The notes beneath the pieces were generated by a model, which was not told the origin of the DNA, made no database searches, and saw only the letters and a program-made list of their open reading frames with translations. DNA of 64,000 nt from assembly GCF_902713615.1 (NCBI RefSeq), contig NC_052162.1:130596653-130660652 (forward strand), read 5' to 3'. The translations under genes were made by a program, and so were the position numbers. Of this stretch, positions 14,585-55,515 are shown piece by piece (position 1 is the first letter of the stretch; every line of letters starts with the position of its first letter). Source of the DNA: Scyliorhinus canicula. Lineage: Eukaryota.

Positions 14585-15165
14585 AGCAATTGCGCATGCG
14601 CCTACTGCATCCCCCTGCGATCAAGATGGCAGCCGATAACCGGGGTTTGTCATCAAAAATCTCGCAGCTGCTCTTGGAGAAAGCAGGTTAGTTTTTTTAT
14701 TGGGGTCTGAAAGTCGACGTCAGTTATTTACAAATCTTTCCAGTTCAACAGCTCAATTCTTTACCTGCCCGGGGATATCTGTTACCGCAGCGCAGATCGA
14801 ACACCAGCTCCGACGTCCGATTCTGGCACGACACTGCGCATGGTCCAGTCACAACGCCATCTACGCCTGCGCGGGAGGTGCTCCGAGGGCTCCGCCCCCT
14901 CATTCATTCCGATTGCTTGGAGGACCAGCCGCTCCCTCTCGGTCCTCCAGCCCCGCCCCTTCATTCACTCCGATTGGTTGGAGGACCAGCCGCGGCCGCT
15001 CGGTCCTCCAGACCCGACCCTTCCTTCACTCCGATTGGTTGGAGGACCAGCCGCTCCCGCTGGGTCCTCCAGCCCCGCCCCCTTTCCTGGTCCGGAATCT
15101 CAATCTCCCGCTTCCGGCTTCACCCCGGCTCCAACTTCAACCAAAGGCCCAAGTGGGAAAAGGTG
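14585..15165. promoter_or_regulatory. Bidirectional CpG-island promoter for ZF1 (-) and ZF2 (+)
   Basis: CpG-rich. NRF1-type GCGCATGCGC at 14592, YY1-type CAAGATGGC at 14622, ATTGG and GC boxes. Divergent donors at 14764 (-) and 15163 (+, AAG|GTGAAT). Confidence 0.75.
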
Positions 15166-15603: not shown

Positions 15604-15955
15604 CTGATAACTTCTGTAAACGCCTCTTACAGGGAGTTAGAAGGAGCAAAGGTCCAGATGGGAAAGTCATCATGTCAAAATCTGACATTCACTCCATTCA
15701 TCAGGAACTGAATATCATCGGCCTTTGTCTGTTCTGTCTGTGGGAAAAGATCTCAAACATCAGTGTGTCTGGAAAAGCACCGAGATACACACACCTGAGT
15801 GAGAGTGTTCCAGTGAACTGACTGGTAAGAGCTTCCACCAGTTACACAGTCTGAAACATCATCACACCATTCACAGCGGGGAGCAACCACACAAGAGTCC
15901 TGTGCGCGGGCAAGGCTTCAACTGGTCATCCAAACTGGAGAGACACAACTGCATC

Positions 15956-17050
15956 ATGGAGAAACCATGGACATATGGAGAATGTGGGATGGGATTCATT
16001 TTCCCATTCGAGCTGGATAATGATCAACGCAGTCACACTGGGGAGAGACCTTTCACTTTCTCCCTCTGTGGAGATGGTTTTCCCAAGTTATCAAGTCTGT
16101 CGACACACCAGCATGTTCACACTGGGGAGAGGCCATTCAGATGCTTCATGTGTGGGAAGGAATTTGCTTACTCATCTGACCTTCTGGCACATGAGGAAGT
16201 CCACACTGGGGAGAGGCCATTCACCTGCTCTGTGTGTGGGAAAGGATTCACTCAGTCATCCCAGCTCACTGAACATCAACTTGTACACAGTGATCAGAGA
16301 CCTTTTAAATGTTCCGACTGTGAGAAGAGCTTTAAAAGCAGTAAGTATCTGCGAATACACCAGCGACTTCACACTGGGGAGAAACTGTTCACCTGCTCCG
16401 AGTGTGGGAAAAGTTTCATTCAGTCATCTGATCTACTTATACACAAGCGTGTTCACACTGGGGAGAGGCCATTCACTTGCTCCAACTGTGGAAAAGGGTT
16501 CACTCTGTCACACCACCTCCTGACACACCAACGAGTTCACACTGGGGAGAGGCCGTATACCTGCTCCGTGTGTGGGAAGGGATTCACTCAGTCATCCCAT
16601 CTGCTGACACACCAGCAAGTTCACACTGGGGAGAGGCCATTCACCTGCTCTGAATGTGGGAAGGGATTCATTCAGTCATACCAACTTCTGATGCACCAGC
16701 GGGTTCACACTGGGGAGAGACCATTCACCTGCTCTGTGTGCGCAAAAGGATTCACTCAGTCATCTGACCTACTGGTTCACCAGCGCGTTCACACTGGGGA
16801 GAGGCCATTTACCTGCTTTGTGTGTGCGAAGAGATTCACTCAGTCATCTCACCTGCTGAAACACCAACAGGTTCACACTGGGGAGAGGCCGTTCATGTGT
16901 TCTACATGTGGGAAGGGATTCACTCAGTCATCCCACCTGCTGAGACACCAGCGGGTTCACACTGGGGAGAGGCCTTTCACCTGCGCCGTGTGTCAGAAGG
17001 GATTCTCGCAGTCATCTCACTTACTGACACACCAGCGAGTTCACAAATGA
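15956..17050 (+). CDS. ZF2: tandem C2H2 zinc-finger protein, 11 intact plus 2 degenerate fingers
   Basis: Acceptor cttacag|G at 15632/15633. First in-frame ATG (atcATGG) at 15956. Open to TGA at 17050. Confidence 0.9.
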   Translation: MEKPWTYGECGMGFIFPFELDNDQRSHTGERPFTFSLCGDGFPKLSSLSTHQHVHTGERPFRCFMCGKEFAYSSDLLAHEEVHTGERPFTCSVCGKGFTQSSQLTEHQLVHSDQRPFKCSDCEKSFKSSKYLRIHQRLHTGEKLFTCSECGKSFIQSSDLLIHKRVHTGERPFTCSNCGKGFTLSHHLLTHQRVHTGERPYTCSVCGKGFTQSSHLLTHQQVHTGERPFTCSECGKGFIQSYQLLMHQRVHTGERPFTCSVCAKGFTQSSDLLVHQRVHTGERPFTCFVCAKRFTQSSHLLKHQQVHTGERPFMCSTCGKGFTQSSHLLRHQRVHTGERPFTCAVCQKGFSQSSHLLTHQRVHK

Positions 17051-20109: not shown

Positions 20110-20523
20110 AAATACAGAGCAGTACAGGAGCACACTGACAGTGTAACACAGTCTCATCAGTCTGCAAACTCCTGTTAAATACAGAGCAGTACAGGAACAC
20201 ACCGACAGTGTAACACAGTCTCATCAGTCTGCAACCTCCTGTTAAATACAGAGCAGCACAGGAGCACACTGACAGTGTAACACAGTCTCATCAGTCTGCA
20301 GACCCCTGTTAAATACAGAGCAGTACAGGAGCACACTGACAGTGTAACACAGTCTCATCAGTCTGCAGGCTCCTGTTAAATACAGAGCAGTACAGGAGCA
20401 CACTGACAGTGTAACACAGTCTCATCAGTCTGCAGACTCCTGTTAAATACAGAGCAGTACAGGAACACACTGACAGTGTAACACAGTCTCATCAGTCTGC
20501 AGACTCCTGTTCAATACAGAGCA
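20110..20523. repeat. 67-bp minisatellite, 6 full units plus a partial
   Basis: Unit aaatacagagcagtacaggagcacactgacagtgtaacacagtctcatcagtctgcagactcctgtt starting at 20110, 20177, 20244, 20311, 20378, 20445. Confidence 0.95.
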
Positions 20524-31440: not shown

Positions 31441-31538
31441 TATGTGCTCCAGTTTCCCATCTCAGTCTAAAGATGTGCAGGTTAGATGGATTGGTCATGA
31501 TAAAATTGCCCCTTAGTGTCCAAAGATGCTCGATGGGG

Positions 31539-33386
31539 TTACTGGGTTAAGGGGATAGGGTGGGGTGTCTTTTGGAGGGTGGGTGCAGATCCTGTGGGCT
31601 GAATGGCCTCCTTCTGCACTGTCAGGATTCTATGATTGGTTTTGCCCCCTTTGTGAAGTCGCTGGTGTCTCAGCAAGCGGGATGAATCAGTGAATCTTTT
31701 GCCACACACGGAGCAGGTGAACAGCTTCTCGCTGGTGTGAGTGCGTTGGTGTCTCAGCAGGCCTGACGAATTAACAAATCCTTTCCCACAAACGGAGCAC
31801 AGGAACGGCCTCTCCCTCGTGTGAGTGCGTTGATGTTTCAGCAGATAATTGCTTCTTTTGAAGGTCTTCTTGCATTCTGAGCACTGAAACGGCCTGTTCT
31901 CAGAGTGAACATGTTGGTGTTGGTGGTAGGCGGAAGATTGAGCAAATCCTTTCCCACACACGGAGCAGGTGAATGGCCTCTCCTCGGTGTGAGTGCGTTG
32001 ATGTTTCAGCAGATCATTGCTTCTTTTAAAGGTCTTCTTGCATTCTGAACAATTAAAAGGCCTCTTATCAGAGTGAACATATTGGTGTTGGTGGTAGGCG
32101 GAAGATTGAGCAAATCCTTTCCCACACACGGAGCAGGTGAATGGCCTCTCCTCGGTGTGAGTGCGTTGATGTTTCAGCAGATCATTGCTTCTTTTAAAGG
32201 TCTTCTTGCATTCTGAACAATTAAAAGGCCTCTTATCAGAGTGAACATGCTGGTGTTGAATGTAGGTGGCAGACTGAGCAAATCTCTTTCCACACACAGT
32301 GCAGGCAAATGGCTTCTCCCCAGTGTGAGTGCGGTGGTGTCTCTGGAGGCTGGATGACTCAGTGAAACCCTTCCCACACACCGAGCAGGTGAACGCCCTC
32401 TCTCCGGTGTGAATAGGCCGGTGTCTCAACAGGTGCTGCAGACAAGTAAATGCCTTCCCGCAAATGAGACAGACGTATGGCCTCTCCCCGGTGTGAACTC
32501 GCTCGTGTATCACAAGATGGGATGAGCGAGGGAATCTCTTCCCACACACGGAGCAGAGGAACGGCCTCTCCCCGGTGTGAACTCGCCGGTGCCTCAGCAG
32601 ATAGCGAGACTGAGTGAATCCCTTCCCACACAGCGAGCAGGTGAACGGCTTCTCCCTGGTGTGACCTTGCTGGTCCAAGCTCTCCCCAGCGTGAAGACTC
32701 TCGTGTGCCAAAAGGTGTGAAGATTGAGTGAATCTCTTCCCACACACGGTGCAGAGGAAGGGCCTCTCCCCTGTGTGAACTCGCTTGTGTATCAGAAGGT
32801 GGGCTAAATGTACAAATTTCTTCCCACACACAGAGCAGAGGAGCGGTCTCCTGCCAGTGCGAGTACACCGGTGTCTCAGCAGGCCCACCCTTCTTTTGAA
32901 GGTCTTCGCACAGTGGGAGCATTTAAATTGTCTCTTACGGGAATGAACCAGTCGGTGCTCAATGTAGTGGGAGGCCTGAGTGAACCTCTTTCCACACTGG
33001 GAGCAGATGAATGGCCTGTCCTTGTTGTGAACTTGCTGGTGCTCAGCGAGATGCACTGAGTCGCTGAACGACTCCCCACAGTGGGAGCAGCTGAACGGTC
33101 TCTCATGTGTGTGAAGGAGCTGGTGCTCCGCGAGGCGAGAGGACTGGCTGAACCTCTTCCCACAGTGGGGGCAGCTGAATGGTCTGGCGTCAGTGTAAAC
33201 CCGCTGGTATTGGACCAGGTCCTCGGAGGTATCAGAGCCATCCCCAGAATCAGAGCTTTGAAGAGGCTCCCCGTCAATGTGATCGAGTTGGTGAGCCAGC
33301 AGGTTGGACGAACACATGAATTTCTTCCCACACACGGAGCAGGGGAACGGACTCTCGCTGTTGCGAGCTCGCTGTCGTGTCAGCAT
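31539..33386 (-). CDS. ZF3: tandem C2H2 zinc-finger protein, about 18 intact fingers
   Basis: 625-codon open frame. Acceptor ttttacag|G, exon starts at 33562. First ATG at 33386. Exon 1 donor GCG|GTGAGT at 37121/37120. Confidence 0.9.
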   Translation of the reverse strand: MLTRQRARNSESPFPCSVCGKKFMCSSNLLAHQLDHIDGEPLQSSDSGDGSDTSEDLVQYQRVYTDARPFSCPHCGKRFSQSSRLAEHQLLHTHERPFSCSHCGESFSDSVHLAEHQQVHNKDRPFICSQCGKRFTQASHYIEHRLVHSRKRQFKCSHCAKTFKRRVGLLRHRCTRTGRRPLLCSVCGKKFVHLAHLLIHKRVHTGERPFLCTVCGKRFTQSSHLLAHESLHAGESLDQQGHTREKPFTCSLCGKGFTQSRYLLRHRRVHTGERPFLCSVCGKRFPRSSHLVIHERVHTGERPYVCLICGKAFTCLQHLLRHRPIHTGERAFTCSVCGKGFTESSSLQRHHRTHTGEKPFACTVCGKRFAQSATYIQHQHVHSDKRPFNCSECKKTFKRSNDLLKHQRTHTEERPFTCSVCGKGFAQSSAYHQHQYVHSDKRPFNCSECKKTFKRSNDLLKHQRTHTEERPFTCSVCGKGFAQSSAYHQHQHVHSENRPFQCSECKKTFKRSNYLLKHQRTHTRERPFLCSVCGKGFVNSSGLLRHQRTHTSEKLFTCSVCGKRFTDSSRLLRHQRLHKGGKTNHRILTVQKEAIQPTGSAPTLQKTPHPIPLTQ

Positions 33387-34882
33387 GTTTACAGCTGTAT
33401 CAGTCCCTTCCCACACGTGGAGCAGGCGGACGGACTCTCACCAATTTCCAGCTGAAACGTCAATTAAATCCCTCCAGATGTTCTAATCTTCAGATCCCGA
33501 TGAATCGAGTGACTGTCAGACATGAGGATTGGTTTGATTGCAAATCCTCCTTTTCTATTGTCCTGTAAAATATGTTTACAAAGAATGACACACAATATAC
33601 AAACAGGCCATTCGGTCTAACTAATCTATATTGGAGTTTCTACTCCTTACAAGTCTTCTCTCATTCGGCTGACCTCAACCTTTCAGCTTATCTTTCTAAT
33701 CCTTTTTCTCATCTTGTTTCCCTTTCAAAGAATCTAAAGTATTTGTATCTGAGGAAATAAATGACTCCTATTTTCCTGATGGATTTATTAGTCTCTTTGT
33801 GTGTTCATAGCCTCCTATGTTGGATACACCAACGAACAGAAACATTCTGTCCACATCTACCTGCTCATCCCATTCAGAATTTTGCAGTTTTCCCCGAGTA
33901 TAAATCCTCCGCTTCTAACCCCTTGTAACAGGAGTTTCCAAAATCCTTTCACTGTCAGTCCAGGATAGAAACTCACGACATTCGCTTGGGTACAGCAAAT
34001 AATTAGGAAAGCTATTAGAATGTTATTATTTATTTCGAGGAGAATCTGTGCGGAGTCTGCACATCCTCCCCGTGTGTGCGTGGGTTTCCTCCGGGTGCTC
34101 CGGTTTCCTCCCACAGTCCAAAGATGTGCAGGTTAGGTGGATTGGCCATGATAAATTGCCCTTAGTGTTGGGTGGGGTTACTGGGTTATGGGGATAGGGT
34201 GGAGGTGTTGGGGTAGGGTGGGGTGCTCTTTCCAAGAGCCGGTGCAGACTCGATGGGCCGAATGGCCTCCTTCTGCACTGTAAATTCTATGATTCTATGA
34301 ATACAAAAGTAGGGCAGTTATGTTTCAGGTATACAGGGCATTATTGTGATCAGGTAAGGTACTCTTTCAAAGGCGGTGGGCCGAATGGCCTCCTGCTGCA
34401 CTGTAGTGTTTCTATGGAAAGCTGTTTATAGAAGGTTTAGTACACTAATATCTGGAATGGTTGGTTGTCACTGGACTAGTAAATCAGCGACCCAAAGTAA
34501 TGTTCCAATCCCACCACTGCGGATGGTGAAATTTGAATTCAATAAAATACTGGAATTAAAAGTCTAATGAAATGAAATGAAAATCGCTTGTCACGAGTAG
34601 GCTTCAATGTAGTTACTGTGAAAAGCCCCTAGTCGCCACAATCCGGAGCGCCTGTCTGGGGAGGCTGGTACGGGAATCGAACCGTGCTGCTGGCCTGCTT
34701 GAAAAGCCAGCCAATGACCATGAAATCATTGTCGATTGTCGTGAAAACCCACCTGGTTCACTAATGTCCTTTCGGGAAAAATACATGTAAATCCAGATCA
34801 AAGGCAATTAGGGATAGGCAATAAATGTTGGCCCGGCCAGTGACACCCACCTCCCATGATGAATTAAAAAAGGAACGGTGAG

Positions 34883-35415
34883 CCAGGCTGGGGACTCGCA
34901 ATTTTTGGGGTTGCAGTGGAGCCGGGAGTGCAGGAGGCGAAAGAGGCCGGTGTTCTGCCCTTTGCGTCCCTAGTAGCCCGGCGGAGGATCTTGCTCCAAT
35001 GGAAGGATGCGAGGCCCCCAAGCGTGGAGGCCTGGATCAATGATATGGTGGGGTTCATTAAATTGGAGGAGGTGAAATTTGCCCTGAGGGAATCAGTACA
35101 AGGGTTCTTTAGGCGGTGGCAGCCTTTCCTGGACTTCCTGGTGGAACGGTAGGGAAATAGGCCGGCAGCAGCAGCAACCCGGGGGGTGGGAGGTTGGATC
35201 GGTGGGAGGGAGAACTGTGTACATGGGTTTGTGAGATGTGGCGGGTGTTATCTCTTTCCCTTTTGTTGTTTGGGTGCTCTTTTGTTTTTTTCTCTTTTGT
35301 AGTTGTAGTTGTAGTTGCTTTTGAAGTTGGGTGGGTATTGTTCTTGGGGTGTTACCGCGGTTGTTTTGTAATAGAGTTGAGACGTTTATATTTTCAATAA
35401 AAATTATTTTTTTTA
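34883..35415 (+). mobile_element. Short L1/Tx1-like 3' fragment
   Basis: FASLVARRRILLQWKD...WQPFLDFL. TSD aaaaaaggaacggtgag at 34866-34882 and 35416-35432. Confidence 0.9.
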
Positions 35416-36514
35416 AAAAAAGGAACGGTGAGACAGGCTATTCCCTTGGGGCAGCATGGTGGTTAGCACTGCTGCCTCACGGCACCAAAGCCCCGGATCG
35501 CTCCTGGCCCGGGTCACTATCCATGTGGAGTTTGCACAATTTCCCCGTGTCTGCGTGGGTCTCATCCCCACAACTCAAAAGATGTGCAGGTTTGGAGAAT
35601 TGGCCACGCTAAATTGCCCCTTAACTGGTCAAATTTTTTTTTTTTTTTTTTAAATACTTGTGTCCCCTGCAGTTTTTAAGATTAAGAGGCAACTTAATTG
35701 AAACATTTAAGATCCTGAAAGTCTTATTAGGGTGGATGTGAAGATTTTTCCACTTGTGGGAGACTAGGTTTGATTCCCAGCTTGGTTCACTGTCTGTGCA
35801 GAGTCTGCACGTTCTCCCCATGTGTGCATGGGTTTCCTCCGATTTCCTCCCTCAATTCCCGAAAGACATGCTTGTTTGGTGAATTGGACATTCTGAATTC
35901 TCCCTCAGTGCTCACCGAACAGCTGCCTGAATGTGGCGCCTCGGGGCTTTTCACAGTAACTTCATTGCAGTATTAATGTAAACCTACTTGTGACACTAAT
36001 AAAGATTATTATTATTAATCTAGACCTACAGGTCACGGTTTCAAACTAAGTATTGCTCAACTGAGTATTGAAGAGGCATGAGATCTTTTGTCTCTCATCA
36101 ATCTGAGGAACTCCCTTCCCGCAAAATGGACAGCAGTCTTTGAATATTTTTCAAAGGCAGGATTGGATAGGTTCATGATTAACAATATTCAAACTTTACT
36201 CACACAAGTGGAATGCACTGCCTGGAAGTGTAGTGGAGACAGGTTCAATCGAGGCACTGGATGATTATTTGAAGAAAAAAACATGCAAGGGTATGGAGGA
36301 AAGGCAGGGGAATGGTTATGATGCTCATCTGGGGAACCGGTGTAGACATGATGTGCTAAATGGCGCCCTTCTGCACTGTAACCATTTTGTGATTGTGAAG
36401 GGGGGCTTACTGGGGTAGCTGAGAATATGGAGTTCAGGTTAAGATCAGATGAGCCATGATCTTATTGAATGGCGAAGCCGAGTGGCCTCCTCATTCCTGC
36501 TGTTAGTGATGAGA

Positions 36515-36965
36515 ACACATGCGCCCTGCTGCACATTGTCCCCGCAAAATGGCGGCAGCGCATGCATCCTGCTGCGTCCCAGCAAAATGGCGGCAGCGCA
36601 TGCGCCCTTCTGCACATTGTCCCAGCAAAATGGCGGCGGCAGCGGATGCACCCTGCTGCATTGTCCCCGCAAAATGGCGGCAGCGCATGCGCCCTGCTGC
36701 ACATTGTCCCAGCAAAATGGCGGCGGCAGCGCATGCACCCTGCTGCACATTGTCCCCGTAAAATGGCGGCAGCGCCTGTGCCCTGCTGCACAGTCCCAAC
36801 AAAATGGCGGCAGCGCATGGGCCCTGCTGCATATTTCCCCCGCAAAATGGCTGTAAGGCATACGCCCTGCCGCACATTGTCCCCTGAAAATTGCGGCAGC
36901 GGCGCCTGCGCCCTGCTGCACATTGACCCCGCAAAATGGCGACGGCGCATGCGCTCTGCTGCTTT
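36515..36965 (-). promoter_or_regulatory. Tandem YY1/NRF1 motif array (10 units of about 43 bp) in ZF3 intron 1
   Basis: Seven perfect AAAATGGCGGC plus three variants. GCGCATGCGC perfect three times, with variants in the other units. Confidence 0.8.
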
Positions 36966-37099
36966 GTCCCTACGAAGGCCGTAAACCCGCGAAAGGGTCC
37001 ACAGCTGCCGCTCAGCCTAATCGCCCTGGAACCTGTTGTTTGGTCTGTCTGATCCTGAACTGGGTTTTCCCGTCCGCCCAGTGCCCCTAACGCTGCCTC

Positions 37100-37330
37100 C
37101 TCGCCCGTCCGTGAACTCACCGCCTGCGGATGAGACAAACAAGCCTCTGTCCCTGGACATCATTGTCGCTGCGCATGCTCCGCATCACAATGCTCGGGGA
37201 GTGATTGACGGCGGTTTCGGACCAATAGAATGAGGGGGCGGGACTGGAGGACCGAGCGGGCGTCTTACGGCCAATCGGAGGGAATGAGGGGCGGGGCTGA
37301 GCCCAGATCTCCCTCATTGGCTGAAACTCT
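37100..37330 (-). promoter_or_regulatory. ZF3 CpG promoter and exon 1
   Basis: CCAAT at about 37222 and 37271, GC boxes, GCGCATGC. Homologous to the 14895-15085 repeats. Confidence 0.75.
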
Positions 37331-37711
37331 GCATCATTTTGAAGCTGATTTGTCTCAAACTCCAGGAGAAAACTGGACCTTTCTGTTTGTGGCTTCAAAC
37401 AGATGAAACCCTGTGGGTGTGGAGCAAACATTTCAACATTTGTTACTGAAACATGAACCAATGCACAAACAATTCAAGGGCTGACCTAATAAAATAACAG
37501 GGTAGACAAGGAACGCCACCATTACAACAAAGGAGACTCCCAGATGATAACAGCCAGGAATGTTGGAGAGAAACGTAATACATTAATAATTCAAAACAAC
37601 AAAGTCCATCAAGGAACAACTGATCCCCAAACACACTTACACTGTGTATGGATACAAAGAACAGTGCAGCACAGGAACAGGCCCTTCGGCCCTTCAAGCC
37701 TGGGCCGATCA

Positions 37712-41139: not shown

Positions 41140-41620
41140 AACCCCCCGCGCTGCAGAAAGCCCCCTGTCAATCAGTCTGGGAGTCCAGTGCGCAAGTGCA
41201 GCGTGGGTGTATGCTCTGAGCATGCTCAGTGTCAGTCATGGCGAGAGAGTGAGGCGGAGCGGACGGTCCGGGAGGAGGTTGTGGGCGCAGGGTAGGAATG
41301 GAAACCGCGGCTGCACTGCAAACTTCATTAACTTCTGGGTAGGCCTGAGGCACCGAAAAAAGCGGCCGTGTTTACCCCTGCCGGCTACCCGCGGTGACAG
41401 GCCGGGGGGGGGGGGGGGGGGGAGCGGGCTCACTGGCCGCCATCTTGCGGGTGGGAGTCAAGGAGGCGGGGCTTCCGCCCCGGTGACAGGCCCGGGTTAC
41501 CCAGGTAACCGGCCGCCGCCATCTTGCGAGTGGGAGTCAGGGAGGCGGGGCTTCCTCCCCCGTGACAGGCCCGGGTTACCCAGGCAACCGGCCACCGCCA
41601 TCTTGGACAGGGCTCAGGTC
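41140..41620 (+). promoter_or_regulatory. ZF4 CpG promoter, exon 1 and intronic 79-bp YY1/GC-box/RFX tandem repeat
   Basis: Donor G|GTAGGA at 41292. CCGCCATCTTG at 41437, 41516, 41595. X-box-like gttacccaggYaac twice. Confidence 0.75.
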
Positions 41621-42044
41621 GTTCCCATGAGGGACTGGGATTGACAGGTTTGGGGAAAGGATATTCCAGAGAAACTAGAATTGTCTGTTCTCAATTTCTA
41701 TCCTGTACTTACAGAAATGACTCTTTTCAAATCCTTTTCTAGGGGAGGATCAAATCAAACGCCACGTCAAAATCTGGCAGATTCATCAGGAGCGGAATAT
41801 CAGCGGTCTTTGAATGTGGAAGGAGAAATGTTTGACGATTCTGTCTGTGGGAAAATATTTCTAACAACAGCGTGACTGGAAAAGCACCGAGACACACACA
41901 CACGTGAGAGTGTTCTAGTGAAGTGACTGTAGAAAGAGCTCTAACCAATTACACAGTCTCAAAACTCATCACCATTCACACTGGGGATAAACTGTACATG
42001 TGCTCTGTGTGAGGAGGAAGCTTCAACTGATCAACAGCCGCAGC

Positions 42045-43457
42045 ATGGAGAAACTGTGGAAATGTGAAGACTGTGGGAAGAAATTCAATTATCCATCCCG
42101 GCTGGAATACCATCGACGCAGTCACACTGGATCCAACACCACAGAGAGACCATGGAAATGTGGGGATTGTGGTAAAGGATTCCATTATCCATGTCTACTG
42201 GAAATACATCGACGCAACCACACCGGGGAGAAGCCATTCACCTGCTCCATATGTGGGAAGGGCTTTACTCAGTCTTCCGGGCTGTTGTCACATCAACGAG
42301 ATCACACTGGGGAGAGGCCATTCACTTGCTCCGTTTGTGGGAAGGGCTTTACTCGGCTATCAGCTCTCTTAACACACCAGAGAAATCACACTGGAGAGAA
42401 GCCGTTCAGCTGCACTTCCTGTGGAAAGAAGTTCAGGTCTTCATCCAACCTCAGTGCACACAAGCGTGTTCACACTGGGGAGAAACCATTCACCTGCTCC
42501 GAGTGTGGGATGGGATTCACTCAGTCAACCAGCCTGGTGGTACACAAGAGAATTCACACTGAGGAGAAGCCATTCAGCTGCACCTTCTGTGGAAAGAGCT
42601 TCAGGCAGTCATCAACACTCGCTGCACACCAACGCACTCACACTGGAGAGAAGCCATTCACTTGCCCTGTTTGTGGGAAGGGATTTACTCAGTCAGCCAG
42701 CCTCAAGTTGCACCAGCCAATTCACACTGGAGAGAAGCCATTCAGCTGCACTCATTGTGGAAAGAGTTTCGGTCAATCTTCTGACCTCACTGCACACCAG
42801 CGAATTCACACTGGGGAGAGGCCGTTCATCTGCTCCATATGTGGGAAGGGATTCACTCAGTCATCTGGCCTTTGGTCACACCAACGAGTTCACACTGGGG
42901 AGAAGCCGTTCAGCTGCACCACCTGTGGAAAGAGTTTTGGGCAGTCTTCCGACCTCACTTCACACCAACGAATTCACACCGGGGAAAGGCCCTTCACCTG
43001 TTCCATTTGTGGGAAAGGATTCACAAAGTCATCCGGCCTTTGGTCACACCAGCGAGTTCACACTGGGGAGAAGCCATTTTGCTGCACTTCCTGTGGGAAG
43101 AGTTTCAGATCGTCATCTGAACTCGTTGTACACCAGCGAGTTCACACCGGGGAGAGGCCATTCACCTGCTCTGTGTGTGGGAAGGGATTCATAACGTCTG
43201 CCAACTGCCTGGTACACCAGCGAATTCACACCGAGGAGAATCCATTCAAATGCACTCAGTGTGGAAAGAGCTTCAGACAGTCATCCACCCTCAAAGCACA
43301 CCAGCGAATTCACACTGGAGAGAGACTGTTCAGCTGCTCCGTGTGTGGGAAGGGGTTCCCTTGGTCATCCCAACTCGTGACACATCAGCGAGTTCATAAA
43401 CGACCGCAGGATTTGGATTCTGCTGTTAGTGCTGCTGTTAATCACACCCAGGATTGA
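42045..43457 (+). CDS. ZF4: tandem C2H2 zinc-finger protein, 16 fingers
   Basis: Acceptor ttttctag|G at 41742/41743. ATG (agcATGG) at 42045. Uninterrupted fingers. Confidence 0.92.
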   Translation: MEKLWKCEDCGKKFNYPSRLEYHRRSHTGSNTTERPWKCGDCGKGFHYPCLLEIHRRNHTGEKPFTCSICGKGFTQSSGLLSHQRDHTGERPFTCSVCGKGFTRLSALLTHQRNHTGEKPFSCTSCGKKFRSSSNLSAHKRVHTGEKPFTCSECGMGFTQSTSLVVHKRIHTEEKPFSCTFCGKSFRQSSTLAAHQRTHTGEKPFTCPVCGKGFTQSASLKLHQPIHTGEKPFSCTHCGKSFGQSSDLTAHQRIHTGERPFICSICGKGFTQSSGLWSHQRVHTGEKPFSCTTCGKSFGQSSDLTSHQRIHTGERPFTCSICGKGFTKSSGLWSHQRVHTGEKPFCCTSCGKSFRSSSELVVHQRVHTGERPFTCSVCGKGFITSANCLVHQRIHTEENPFKCTQCGKSFRQSSTLKAHQRIHTGERLFSCSVCGKGFPWSSQLVTHQRVHKRPQDLDSAVSAAVNHTQD

Positions 43458-53713: not shown

Positions 53714-54959
53714 ATGCCGGAATGCAGCGACTAGGGGCTTTTTACAGTAACTTCATTGAAGCCTACTTGTGTCAATAAGCGAACTATTACTATAATTATT
53801 ATTATTAATTTCAGTAACCTGCACTAAACATCCCACAAATCCAACTCCTGTTCCCTTTGGAGGGGGAATAATTTCTGAGGAGTTCCTTACAATATCCAGG
53901 AAATTAAAATCTAACTAAAAACAATTACATTCAGAAAGAAGATAACAGTATTTGAAAAATAAATTTAGAATACCTAATTATTTTTATTTTTCCAATTAAG
54001 GGTCAATTTAGCGTGGCCAATCCACTTACCCTGCACATCTTTGAGTTGCAGGGGTGAAACCCACGCAGACACGGGGAGAATGTGCAAACTCCACACGGAC
54101 AGTGACCCAGAGCCGGGATCAAGCCCGGGTCCTCGGTGCCGTGAGGCAGCAGTGCTAACCACGGTGGAGATGGTGATGGAGATCCTTGTAGAGACACAAA
54201 TCTAGGAAAACATTAACACACACATCACTAAGTATGGACTGATAAGGGCAGCACGGTGGCGCAGTGGTAGCACTGGCTTTTAATAACGCCGGCTGCAAGC
54301 GGCCTTTATAATGGCCACGAACATATAAAAAAAATTTGGCCACATGCGCAGTGCTGCCGCTATTTTTTTTAATGGTTGCAGCTTTTTATTTTACAAGTTC
54401 GGGGGGCTATATTAATTTGTTTTATTCATTTTTTTTTTACAAGTTTGGGGGGGGTTATTCATTTATTTTATTCATTTAATTATTATTTTTTTCATTTATT
54501 TTATTAATTTTTTTTTTTACAAGTTATGGGGGTTTATTTGATGAAATTTTACAGGAAAAAAATGCACAACTTTGGACAGATGGAGACTCCATACTTCACA
54601 CGGGAAGGCTTCACTTTCATCCAACAGGTTCCATTGGAGGAGCGTGTTCGAGGGCCAAAGGGACCCAAACCACATTTCCTCCATTTTTGTCAGCAGCAAA
54701 CAAGGTAAGAGAAAATGGTGGGTCGCTCAGGTCGGCCGGGTTGGGTCCTGAAGGTTGGCCAGTTGGTAAAAATGGGTCCCCGGAAAAAAAGTTTGCAGGA
54801 CACTGGAATAGAGGGATATGGCACGAGGAAGTACTGAGGGTTTTGGCCAAGGATGGTATCATGGCCTGTACAGGCTTGGAGGGCCGAAGGGCCTGTCCCT
54901 GTGTTTTTGTCTTTATTCATTCAATGGGGGAGGGGGTGGAGAATGTACTGTCTCCTGAG

Positions 54960-55355
54960 TGACCAAACGAGCGTCCCGCGCAGGCGCAATACTGGGCAGT
55001 GACTGGAACATGGGCAGTGACTGGAACATGCGCAGTGCCGGTTCTGACGGGAGCATGCGCAGTCCGGATGTCCCTGGAGCTCTCGGAAGGCGCTGAAAGG
55101 TGTCGACCGCAGGCGAGCAAACGGAGTCGGTGAGTGGGGAGGAATGTCGGCGGCGGACTTGGAAGCAAGGCTTCTTAAACACCTAGTGGTGGGGCTGAAA
55201 CAGGGAATGCGAGGTTCCCGCTCCCGGGGATGCACTAAGTGAGGGAGTGGTGTCTGCGGCCCTCTCCTTGGAGTCCGACCCGAGTTAACGGCCGCCATCT
55301 TGAGAGGGTCAATGTGCAGCAGAGCGCATGCGCGGTGACCCCTCTCCCCTCAGCA
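54960..55355 (+). promoter_or_regulatory. CpG promoter and exon 1 upstream of ZF5/ZF6, with intronic YY1+NRF1 module
   Basis: Repeated catgcgcagt, donor CG|GTGAGT at 55130, GCCGCCATCTTG at 55291, GCGCATGCGC at 55324. Confidence 0.75.
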
Positions 55356-55515
55356 GGCAGAAGGAATGAGTGATGGATTCTGGAAACTCCTTTACACGGA
55401 GGGGGGAAGGGAGGGGAGGATTAGAAAGGGGAAGAACAGCAAACTGGAACCAAGAGGAATGTTTGTCTCCTCTCAAACTCCATTATATAGATGCTTAACA
55501 CTTCCTACAGATTGG

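Follow-up and report, generated by a model that had tools for sequence, protein, structure and literature searches.

The predicted first intron of ZF3, a zinc-finger gene on the minus strand of the 64,000-nucleotide stretch of the Scyliorhinus canicula genome analysed here (the window), contains a compact tandem repeat with many YY1-type motifs. Does this array gather YY1 beside the promoter, or is it a minisatellite that multiplied motif-bearing DNA to no effect? A sequence-only reading had proposed a ten-fold amplified module of YY1 and NRF1 sites, and that interpretation was partly supported by our analysis. We put the probability that the array is a multivalent YY1 platform, lying in an unmethylated promoter-proximal island, at roughly 40%. 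Nearly as likely is a neutral promoter-side minisatellite, produced by slippage or unequal exchange, in which the YY1 and NRF1 motifs are passengers from an ancestral copy and copy number is inconsequential.

TRF placed the array at 36518-36962 with a period of 43 and 10.3 copies (77% matches, score 522), confirming a ten-fold repeat of about 43 bp; higher-order periods of 87 and 130 were also reported. Unit alignment and motif counts resolved it into 10 minus-strand units of 38-46 bp each with a 43-bp consensus, packed into 445 bp. There are no N bases in the 64-kb window. YY1 sites were scored with the consensus forms given in PMC4196374, PMC11602158 and PMC10760456. A perfect AAAATGGCGGC was found in seven units, always on the + strand of the window, which in the orientation of ZF3 reads GCCGCCATTTT. 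All units run in one direction, a single site orientation of the Peg3-DMR type. Matches to AANATGGCGGC numbered 10 in the whole window against 0.06 expected from shuffles, and seven of these 10 were the AAAATGGCGGC copies in the array, in agreement with the seven perfect YY1 motifs out of ten counted originally. The YY1 core GCCATnTT was kept in nine of the ten units, as CCGCCATTTT in seven, GTCGCCATTTT in unit 1 and CAGCCATTTTG in unit 3; the tenth has a GCAAT core and its YY1 site should be dead. Experimentally supported YY1 sites have the form CCGCCATnTT, or GCCAT plus TT (PMC10760456, PMC11602158, PMC4196374). The array core fits these sites, and the tandem repeat carries several YY1 consensus sites with a GCCAT core and downstream TT.

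The NRF1 half of the proposal fared less well. Taking the NRF1 10-mers as given in PMC3575792, we found GCGCATGCGC five times in the window against 0.01 expected, and perfect in only three array units. Allowing GCGCAGGCGC raised the count of NRF1-type sites to four among about 11 copies, and the others are one- or two-base variants. The claim had been that an NRF1 site "or variants" abuts each YY1 site; since the remaining units differ by one or two bases, it is these two words that bear most of it. Neither GCGCATGCGC nor the GCGCCTGCGC palindrome is present in most units, so the array does not qualify as an NRF1 cluster.

Variation among the units separates the two motifs further. In gene orientation each unit runs from a YY1-type block (GCCGCCATTTT) through a 7-nt linker and a middle block, block B (CAATGTGCAGCAGGG), to an NRF1-type block (CGCATGCGC). 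Mismatched cells made up 3.6% of the YY1 block (4/110), 10.7% of block B (16/150), 14% of the NRF1 block, scored as CGCATGCGC(T) (14/100), and 14.3% of the linker (10/70). Within the 8-nt YY1 core, GCCATTTT, a single cell in 80 was mismatched, and the YY1 block was the least variable among all 33 eleven-column windows of the unit. Compared with the rest of the unit (4/110 vs 40/320 mismatched cells) its conservation was significant (Fisher p = 0.006), with the reservation that the cells are non-independent and come from 10 related units; counted by variant events, the contrast was weaker (4 in the 11 YY1 columns vs 28 in the 32 others). That the YY1 block is significantly less variable speaks against a neutral minisatellite, whilst NRF1 sites that decay as fast as the linker speak for one. 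Of the two kinds of consensus site named by the sequence-only reading, YY1 is well kept in the array and NRF1 is degenerate. The expectation that motifs should be better kept than spacers likewise held for YY1 within the array and failed for NRF1, and the supposed spacer proved to be conserved in its own right across 15 lineages (see below).

ZF3 is a C2H2 gene. Its C2H2 ORF lies at 31539-33416 on the minus strand, in a coding exon at 31539..33451 (ATG 33386, stop 31539-31541, 615 aa), and the protein consists essentially of C2H2 fingers (PF00096, E = 1.2e-92; PF13465, E = 2.3e-94). An exact-protein look-up with ZF3, aimed at transcript contigs, gave no match. The promoter, at 37191..37330 on the minus strand, has CCAAT boxes at 37222-37226 and 37271-37275 and GC boxes at 37235-37243 and 37289-37297, and is homologous to a 61-bp promoter unit repeated at 14892-15081. 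In minus-strand reading, a short GC-rich segment lies between these boxes and the predicted donor. A non-coding exon 1 was predicted at 37120..37190 (minus strand), its 3' end given by the donor GCG/GTGAGT (GT at 37119) and its transcription start likewise putative. The array starts 157 bp downstream of this donor, which was itself predicted from sequence; the earlier estimate of about 150 bp was close.

Promoter and array lie in one CpG island of 900 bp (36451..37350), where GC and CpG o/e reach the thresholds of 0.55 and 0.65 over a minimum length of 500 bp. The array forms the downstream half of this island and doubles its length. Its GC content is 0.63 and its CpG o/e 0.80, compared with 0.47 for the whole window and 0.30 in the 500 bp beyond the array. 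Consensus CpG cells were kept in 27 of 40 cases and lost as TG or CA in just five, indicating that CpGs in the array have decayed no faster than other sites. We infer an unmethylated germ-line state of the array during the divergence of its units, in which case such CpG retention is as expected. For a neutral minisatellite it is awkward that CpGs have been kept despite about 12% divergence among the units outside the YY1 block. Taken together, the contrast in favour of the YY1 block, the retained CpGs and the CpG-island status would favour a function.

Between the array and the 3' end of intron 1 lies a transposon-derived insertion of about 2.5 kb (33980..36517), recognised by comparison with paralogues. 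It lies between the array and the conserved branch-point and acceptor region of the family, which resumes at about 33970-33920. A putative non-coding exon 2, homologous to the exon-2 region of the paralogues, was predicted at 33861..33921 on the minus strand (acceptor ...ACAAG/G, donor CAG/GTAGAT). In typical paralogues only about 60 nt separate the module from the intron-1 acceptor downstream of it, and there is a sense-strand GCATG in each NRF1 palindrome. Both observations would suit an intronic RNA element acting on intron-1 splicing, either as a cluster of GCAUG (RBFOX-type) sites or through RNA structure. Such an element is hardly credible for ZF3, where 2.5 kb of transposon insertions stand between array and acceptor and where the YY1 site, rather than GCATG, is kept best. 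Folding of the array strand was also in no way unusual (z = +0.69), leaving the amplification unexplained by single-strand DNA structure, and an Rfam search of the array returned no family (best E = 0.73).

RNA-like runs that hold 0.28-0.35 of the words of 31500-37400 hold just 0.00-0.08 of the words of 36518-37260, and in the one run at 0.08 this share is about the size of a short exon. These values fit an intronic array that is absent from mature RNA, exon 1 and its donor being predictions from the sequence and from homology to paralogues. They bear equally on the idea that the units are small initiator regions, which would provide an alternative start for ZF3 or an antisense transcript running towards the CCAAT promoter. 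The orientation of AAAATGGCGGC in the array (+ strand) is the usual one just downstream of human TSSs. Support for the idea comes from the YY1 motif being typical of positions just downstream of TSSs (PMC8384218), from tandem YY1 monomers that act as promoters in mouse L1 (PMC11602158), and from some small runs that hold 0.20-0.38 of the promoter and array words. We nevertheless consider internal promoters distinctly unlikely, as RNA-like runs that contain the ZF exon hold so little of 36518-37260, and as no retrotransposon body follows the array, its flanks being ancestral ZNF intron.

The origin of the array is clearer than its role. In the window, two paralogues carry the module in single copy. 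In a minus-strand gene it lies at 14592-14634, 130 nt beyond the predicted donor (14764), and in a plus-strand gene at 55291..55333, where the predicted donor GT (55130) is 161 nt upstream. The plus-strand module has perfect YY1 and NRF1 blocks, and block B is present. When ZF3 was globally aligned with this 55-kb gene (54951-55400), the array fell exactly at the position of the single module, with homologous flanks on both sides. Thus, the array was amplified in place, and the view that it is an amplified form of a module found once at the same position in paralogues was borne out. The alignment also identified the ancestral module copy, at the promoter-proximal edge of the array (36944..36988, minus strand). 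This copy has kept block B and a perfect GCGCATGCGC, and compared with the 55-kb paralogue its YY1 core lacks 6 bp. At its distal end, the array passes from the last unit into ancestral downstream flank, which is followed by the roughly 2.5 kb of transposon sequence. Almost certainly, judging from these alignments, the array consists of ten units plus the damaged ancestral copy and was amplified in situ from a 43-bp promoter-proximal module.

Other origins of the repeat were rejected. A transposon source for the unit was dismissed because the module is present in paralogues that lack the transposon, and because the unit's only likeness to the tail of the neighbouring transposon is weak and partial (nhmmer score 8.2 at 36363-36378). 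Long ORFs cross the array, but a coding repeat was discounted since no reading frame would survive a 43-bp period with units of 38-46 bp. A LINE-1-type monomer array was likewise rejected, as both flanks align to the intron of a single-copy paralogue; downstream of the array there are unrelated transposon tails in the opposite orientation and no retrotransposon body. A scan for bacterial-type promoters and terminators, irrelevant here, gave nothing above shuffles.

We then looked at the module across the genome. Its strict pattern, CTGCTGCACAT joined to AANATGGCGGC with a gap of 6-16 nt, matched 66 times, compared with 0 for the reversed control. A 361-bp query made up of promoter, predicted exon 1 and the start of intron 1 returned 1211 first-look candidates in the 4.22-Gb genome, making ZF3 a member of a very large gene family. 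Among these candidates, 40 scored matches showed 77-82% identity over the promoter, exon 1 and the first 45 intron nt. Several other module loci share more of the family's intron-1/exon-2 region, and ZNF ORFs lie downstream at the other module loci where examined, gene context being seen on one side only for 15 loci. The module belongs to the 5' region of a very large shark C2H2-ZNF family.

Amplification of the module is not special to ZF3. BLAST searches from the array found independent arrays at no fewer than six, that is at least six, other loci, with 2-14 copies. A 45-bp unit is repeated 13.9 times at C11:155.37 Mb (91% matches, CpG o/e 0.89, CpG-poor flanks) and 11.1 times at C27:14.00 Mb (95% matches, CpG o/e 0.25), the latter with TCCAT cores and hence dead YY1 sites. 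The array at C17:130.95 Mb is complex (25/44/70-bp) and holds 11 GCCATnTT, and shorter arrays were found on C14 (5 copies, CpG o/e 0.28), on C8 (4 copies, 0.16) and at C17:130.14 Mb (3 copies, 0.83). Recurrence of this kind supports a neutral minisatellite, and so does the C27 array, which is YY1-dead and CpG-decayed yet retains 95% unit identity. With the same piece amplified at several other places in the genome, the ZF3 array may be an ordinary promoter-side repeat. What a neutral minisatellite does not readily explain is that the YY1 GCCAT core survives in most units of six of the seven arrays, even where the flanking CpG has decayed. The NRF1 10-mers survive solely in the ZF3 array and one other.

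In the C11 array (155372167-155372793), CACGTG stands where the NRF1 palindrome would be. Both 500-bp flanks are rich in AT and have a CpG o/e of 0.4, which makes the repeat by itself an isolated CpG-rich island. Within 10 kb on the downstream side there was no ZF ORF.

In an alignment of 15 lineages, block B (ATGTGCAGCAGGG, with an invariant TGCA) was conserved like the YY1 block and above the NRF1 block, an apparent conservation inflated by the choice of lineages for overall similarity. With the supposed spacer conserved too, the unit is more than YY1 plus NRF1, and its 43 bp comprise three conserved blocks: a YY1-type GCCGCCATnTT, the middle block CAATGTGCAGCAGGG and an NRF1-type palindrome. 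The array might then serve another factor as a platform, one that recognises either block B or the 43-bp unit as a whole, for instance a poly-zinc-finger protein of the family, with YY1 and NRF1 secondary. In keeping with such a reader, all seven arrays contain block B, even where an NRF1 site or a GCCAT core is missing. We think it very unlikely all the same: no known motif match was confirmed for block B, it varies more than the YY1 block in the ZF3 array, and its standing across lineages owes something to how these were picked. Block B partly resembles ZIC, CTCF and ZNF143 sites, which we take to be resemblance and not identity.

The largest subfamily provides further evidence for a neutral minisatellite. 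Its 29 paralogue loci were ascertained via the promoter, not via the module, and in them the YY1 core has decayed to ACCACCATCC, with block B and the NRF1 site intact and the gene unit apparently retained. Tandem duplications are, moreover, a common feature of the window: four ZNF 5' regions have motif-bearing units duplicated in tandem, in three cases at a promoter or just upstream of one and in the fourth in intron 1 (the array). Recurrent amplification that includes dead motifs, loss of YY1 in the largest subfamily, linker-like decay of NRF1 and frequent 5' duplication together argue against a selected "tunable" element. This weighs on the fullest functional reading, in which YY1, CAATGTGCAGCAGGG and NRF1 sites form a three-part cis-element of the family, and selection has time and again reset its copy number, which ranges among paralogues from 1 to about 14, as a rheostat independent of Peg3 and L1. 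We regard such a rheostat as unlikely; if it were true, paralogues would differ in promoter strength or methylation resistance through unit number.

In the YY1-platform reading, YY1 would dock at many array units inside an unmethylated promoter-proximal island, and its multimers would strengthen or steady the activity of the ZF3 promoter and help to keep the island unmethylated. NRF1 would contribute at a few units only. Such action of YY1 multimers has been shown for tandem mouse L1 Tf monomers (PMC11602158) and proposed for the Peg3-DMR (PMC4196374). [quoted passage not shown]

Among the closest known systems, the Peg3-DMR is an intron-1 tandem repeat with about 10 YY1 sites (PMC4196374). 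The shark array resembles it as a tandem repeat in the first intron of a zinc-finger gene (in the shark, a predicted intron), directly downstream of a CpG-island promoter. The number of YY1 sites is again about 10, in the form GCCGCCATnTT or, in Peg3, GGCGCCATCTT (PMC4196374). The Peg3-like layout remarked on in the sequence-only reading was thus supported, with the tandem YY1 array in a predicted first intron and inside the CpG island at 36451-37350. The likeness rests on this layout and not on allele-specific methylation, and there is no sequence homology to Peg3. In Peg3 the sites are scattered through irregular repeats that cover about 2.5 kb, whereas the shark has ten 43-bp units in 445 bp. 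Unlike Peg3, the shark unit also contains a conserved middle block and an NRF1-type palindrome, and the module is amplified at several paralogous loci, in a shark host.

Mouse L1 Tf 5'UTR monomers and the shark units are alike in having one YY1 site each, GTCGCCATCTTG in L1 and GTCGCCATTTT in shark unit 1. L1 Tf requires both the GCCAT core and the TT downstream of it, its monomers are synergistic and CpG methylation lowers YY1 binding (PMC11602158). L1 monomers of about 200 bp head a retrotransposon, whereas the 43-bp shark units have no element body and are flanked by ancestral intron. On the X chromosome of Poecilia picta, the YY1 motifs CCGCCATATTGT and CAGCCATTTTGT are multiplied and linked to differential methylation (PMC10760456); the Xist-type YY1 site is CCGCCATnTT (PMC10760456). 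The two fishes share YY1 motif multiplication outside mammals, and shark unit 3 has CAGCCATTTTG. In P. picta the motifs were dispersed chromosome-wide by a DNA transposon, in contrast to local tandem duplication in gene 5' regions in the shark. In human CpG-type promoters the YY1 consensus is over-represented just downstream of the TSS, as PMC8384218 reports citing Xi et al. 2007, and CCGCCATCTT and GCGCATGCGC are among the most retained mammalian 10-mers (PMC3575792). Human core-promoter YY1 sites are single and tens of bases from the TSS, whereas those of the shark are multiplied and lie 130-160 nt past the predicted exon-1 donor.

Set beside these systems, the array would be a non-homologous addition to a known kind, the tandem YY1-site array beside a CpG-island promoter. 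What is new relative to known tandem YY1 arrays is the conserved middle block and the copy-number series among paralogues. If the array is YY1-bound and acts in a copy-number-dependent manner, the Peg3-DMR and L1-monomer design would have a counterpart in a cartilaginous fish, and tandem YY1 platforms by CpG-island promoters would arise repeatedly in vertebrates. Paralogues with 1, 2, 3, 4, 5 and 10-14 units would then form a natural dose series relating motif number to output and methylation. If YY1 is not bound, the array is one more promoter-side minisatellite and a caution on inferring function from motif-rich repeats.

Additional observations concern the family and the sequencing runs. 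Across at least 590 bp spanning promoter, exon 1 and intron 1, the 29 loci of the largest subfamily match their consensus with about 95% identity. Such likeness speaks for a very recent ZNF duplication burst, much of it on unplaced scaffolds, and makes a per-column profile of the 29 paralogues uninformative. Unplaced scaffolds also hold a subfamily of dozens of copies in which two tandem units are fixed, followed by two CCGGAAG (ETS-type) sites and the exon-2 region. Runs X1, X26, X28 and X29 (200-310 million letters, one study) hold 0.20-0.38 of the 36518-37260 words, and X1 also holds 0.44 of the 31500-37400 words. Their share exceeds that of random low-coverage DNA, and they may stem from an enrichment assay such as open chromatin or ChIP.

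The window contains further tandem repeats. At 14892-15081, a 61-bp unit with a CCAAT and a GC box is repeated 3.1 times (89% matches) and forms the promoter of a plus-strand ZF gene (ORF 15902-17050), head-to-head with the minus-strand paralogue whose module lies at 14592-14634. At 41436-41605, just upstream of the ZF ORF at 42000-43457, a 79-bp unit is repeated 2.2 times (93% matches); a perfect GCCGCCATCTTG opens each unit and GC boxes lie inside, making it the second amplified unit with a YY1 motif in the window, distinct from that of ZF3. The 55-kb paralogue has, in its promoter, 18-/27-bp repeats of GACTGGAACATGCGCAGTG-like units (54993-55080), an element that occurs once in the minus-strand promoter near 14800-14860. 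Frequent tandem duplication in ZNF 5' regions points to a general mutational tendency. Away from the ZF promoters, a 67-bp unit is repeated 6.2 times with 95% identity at 20110-20523.
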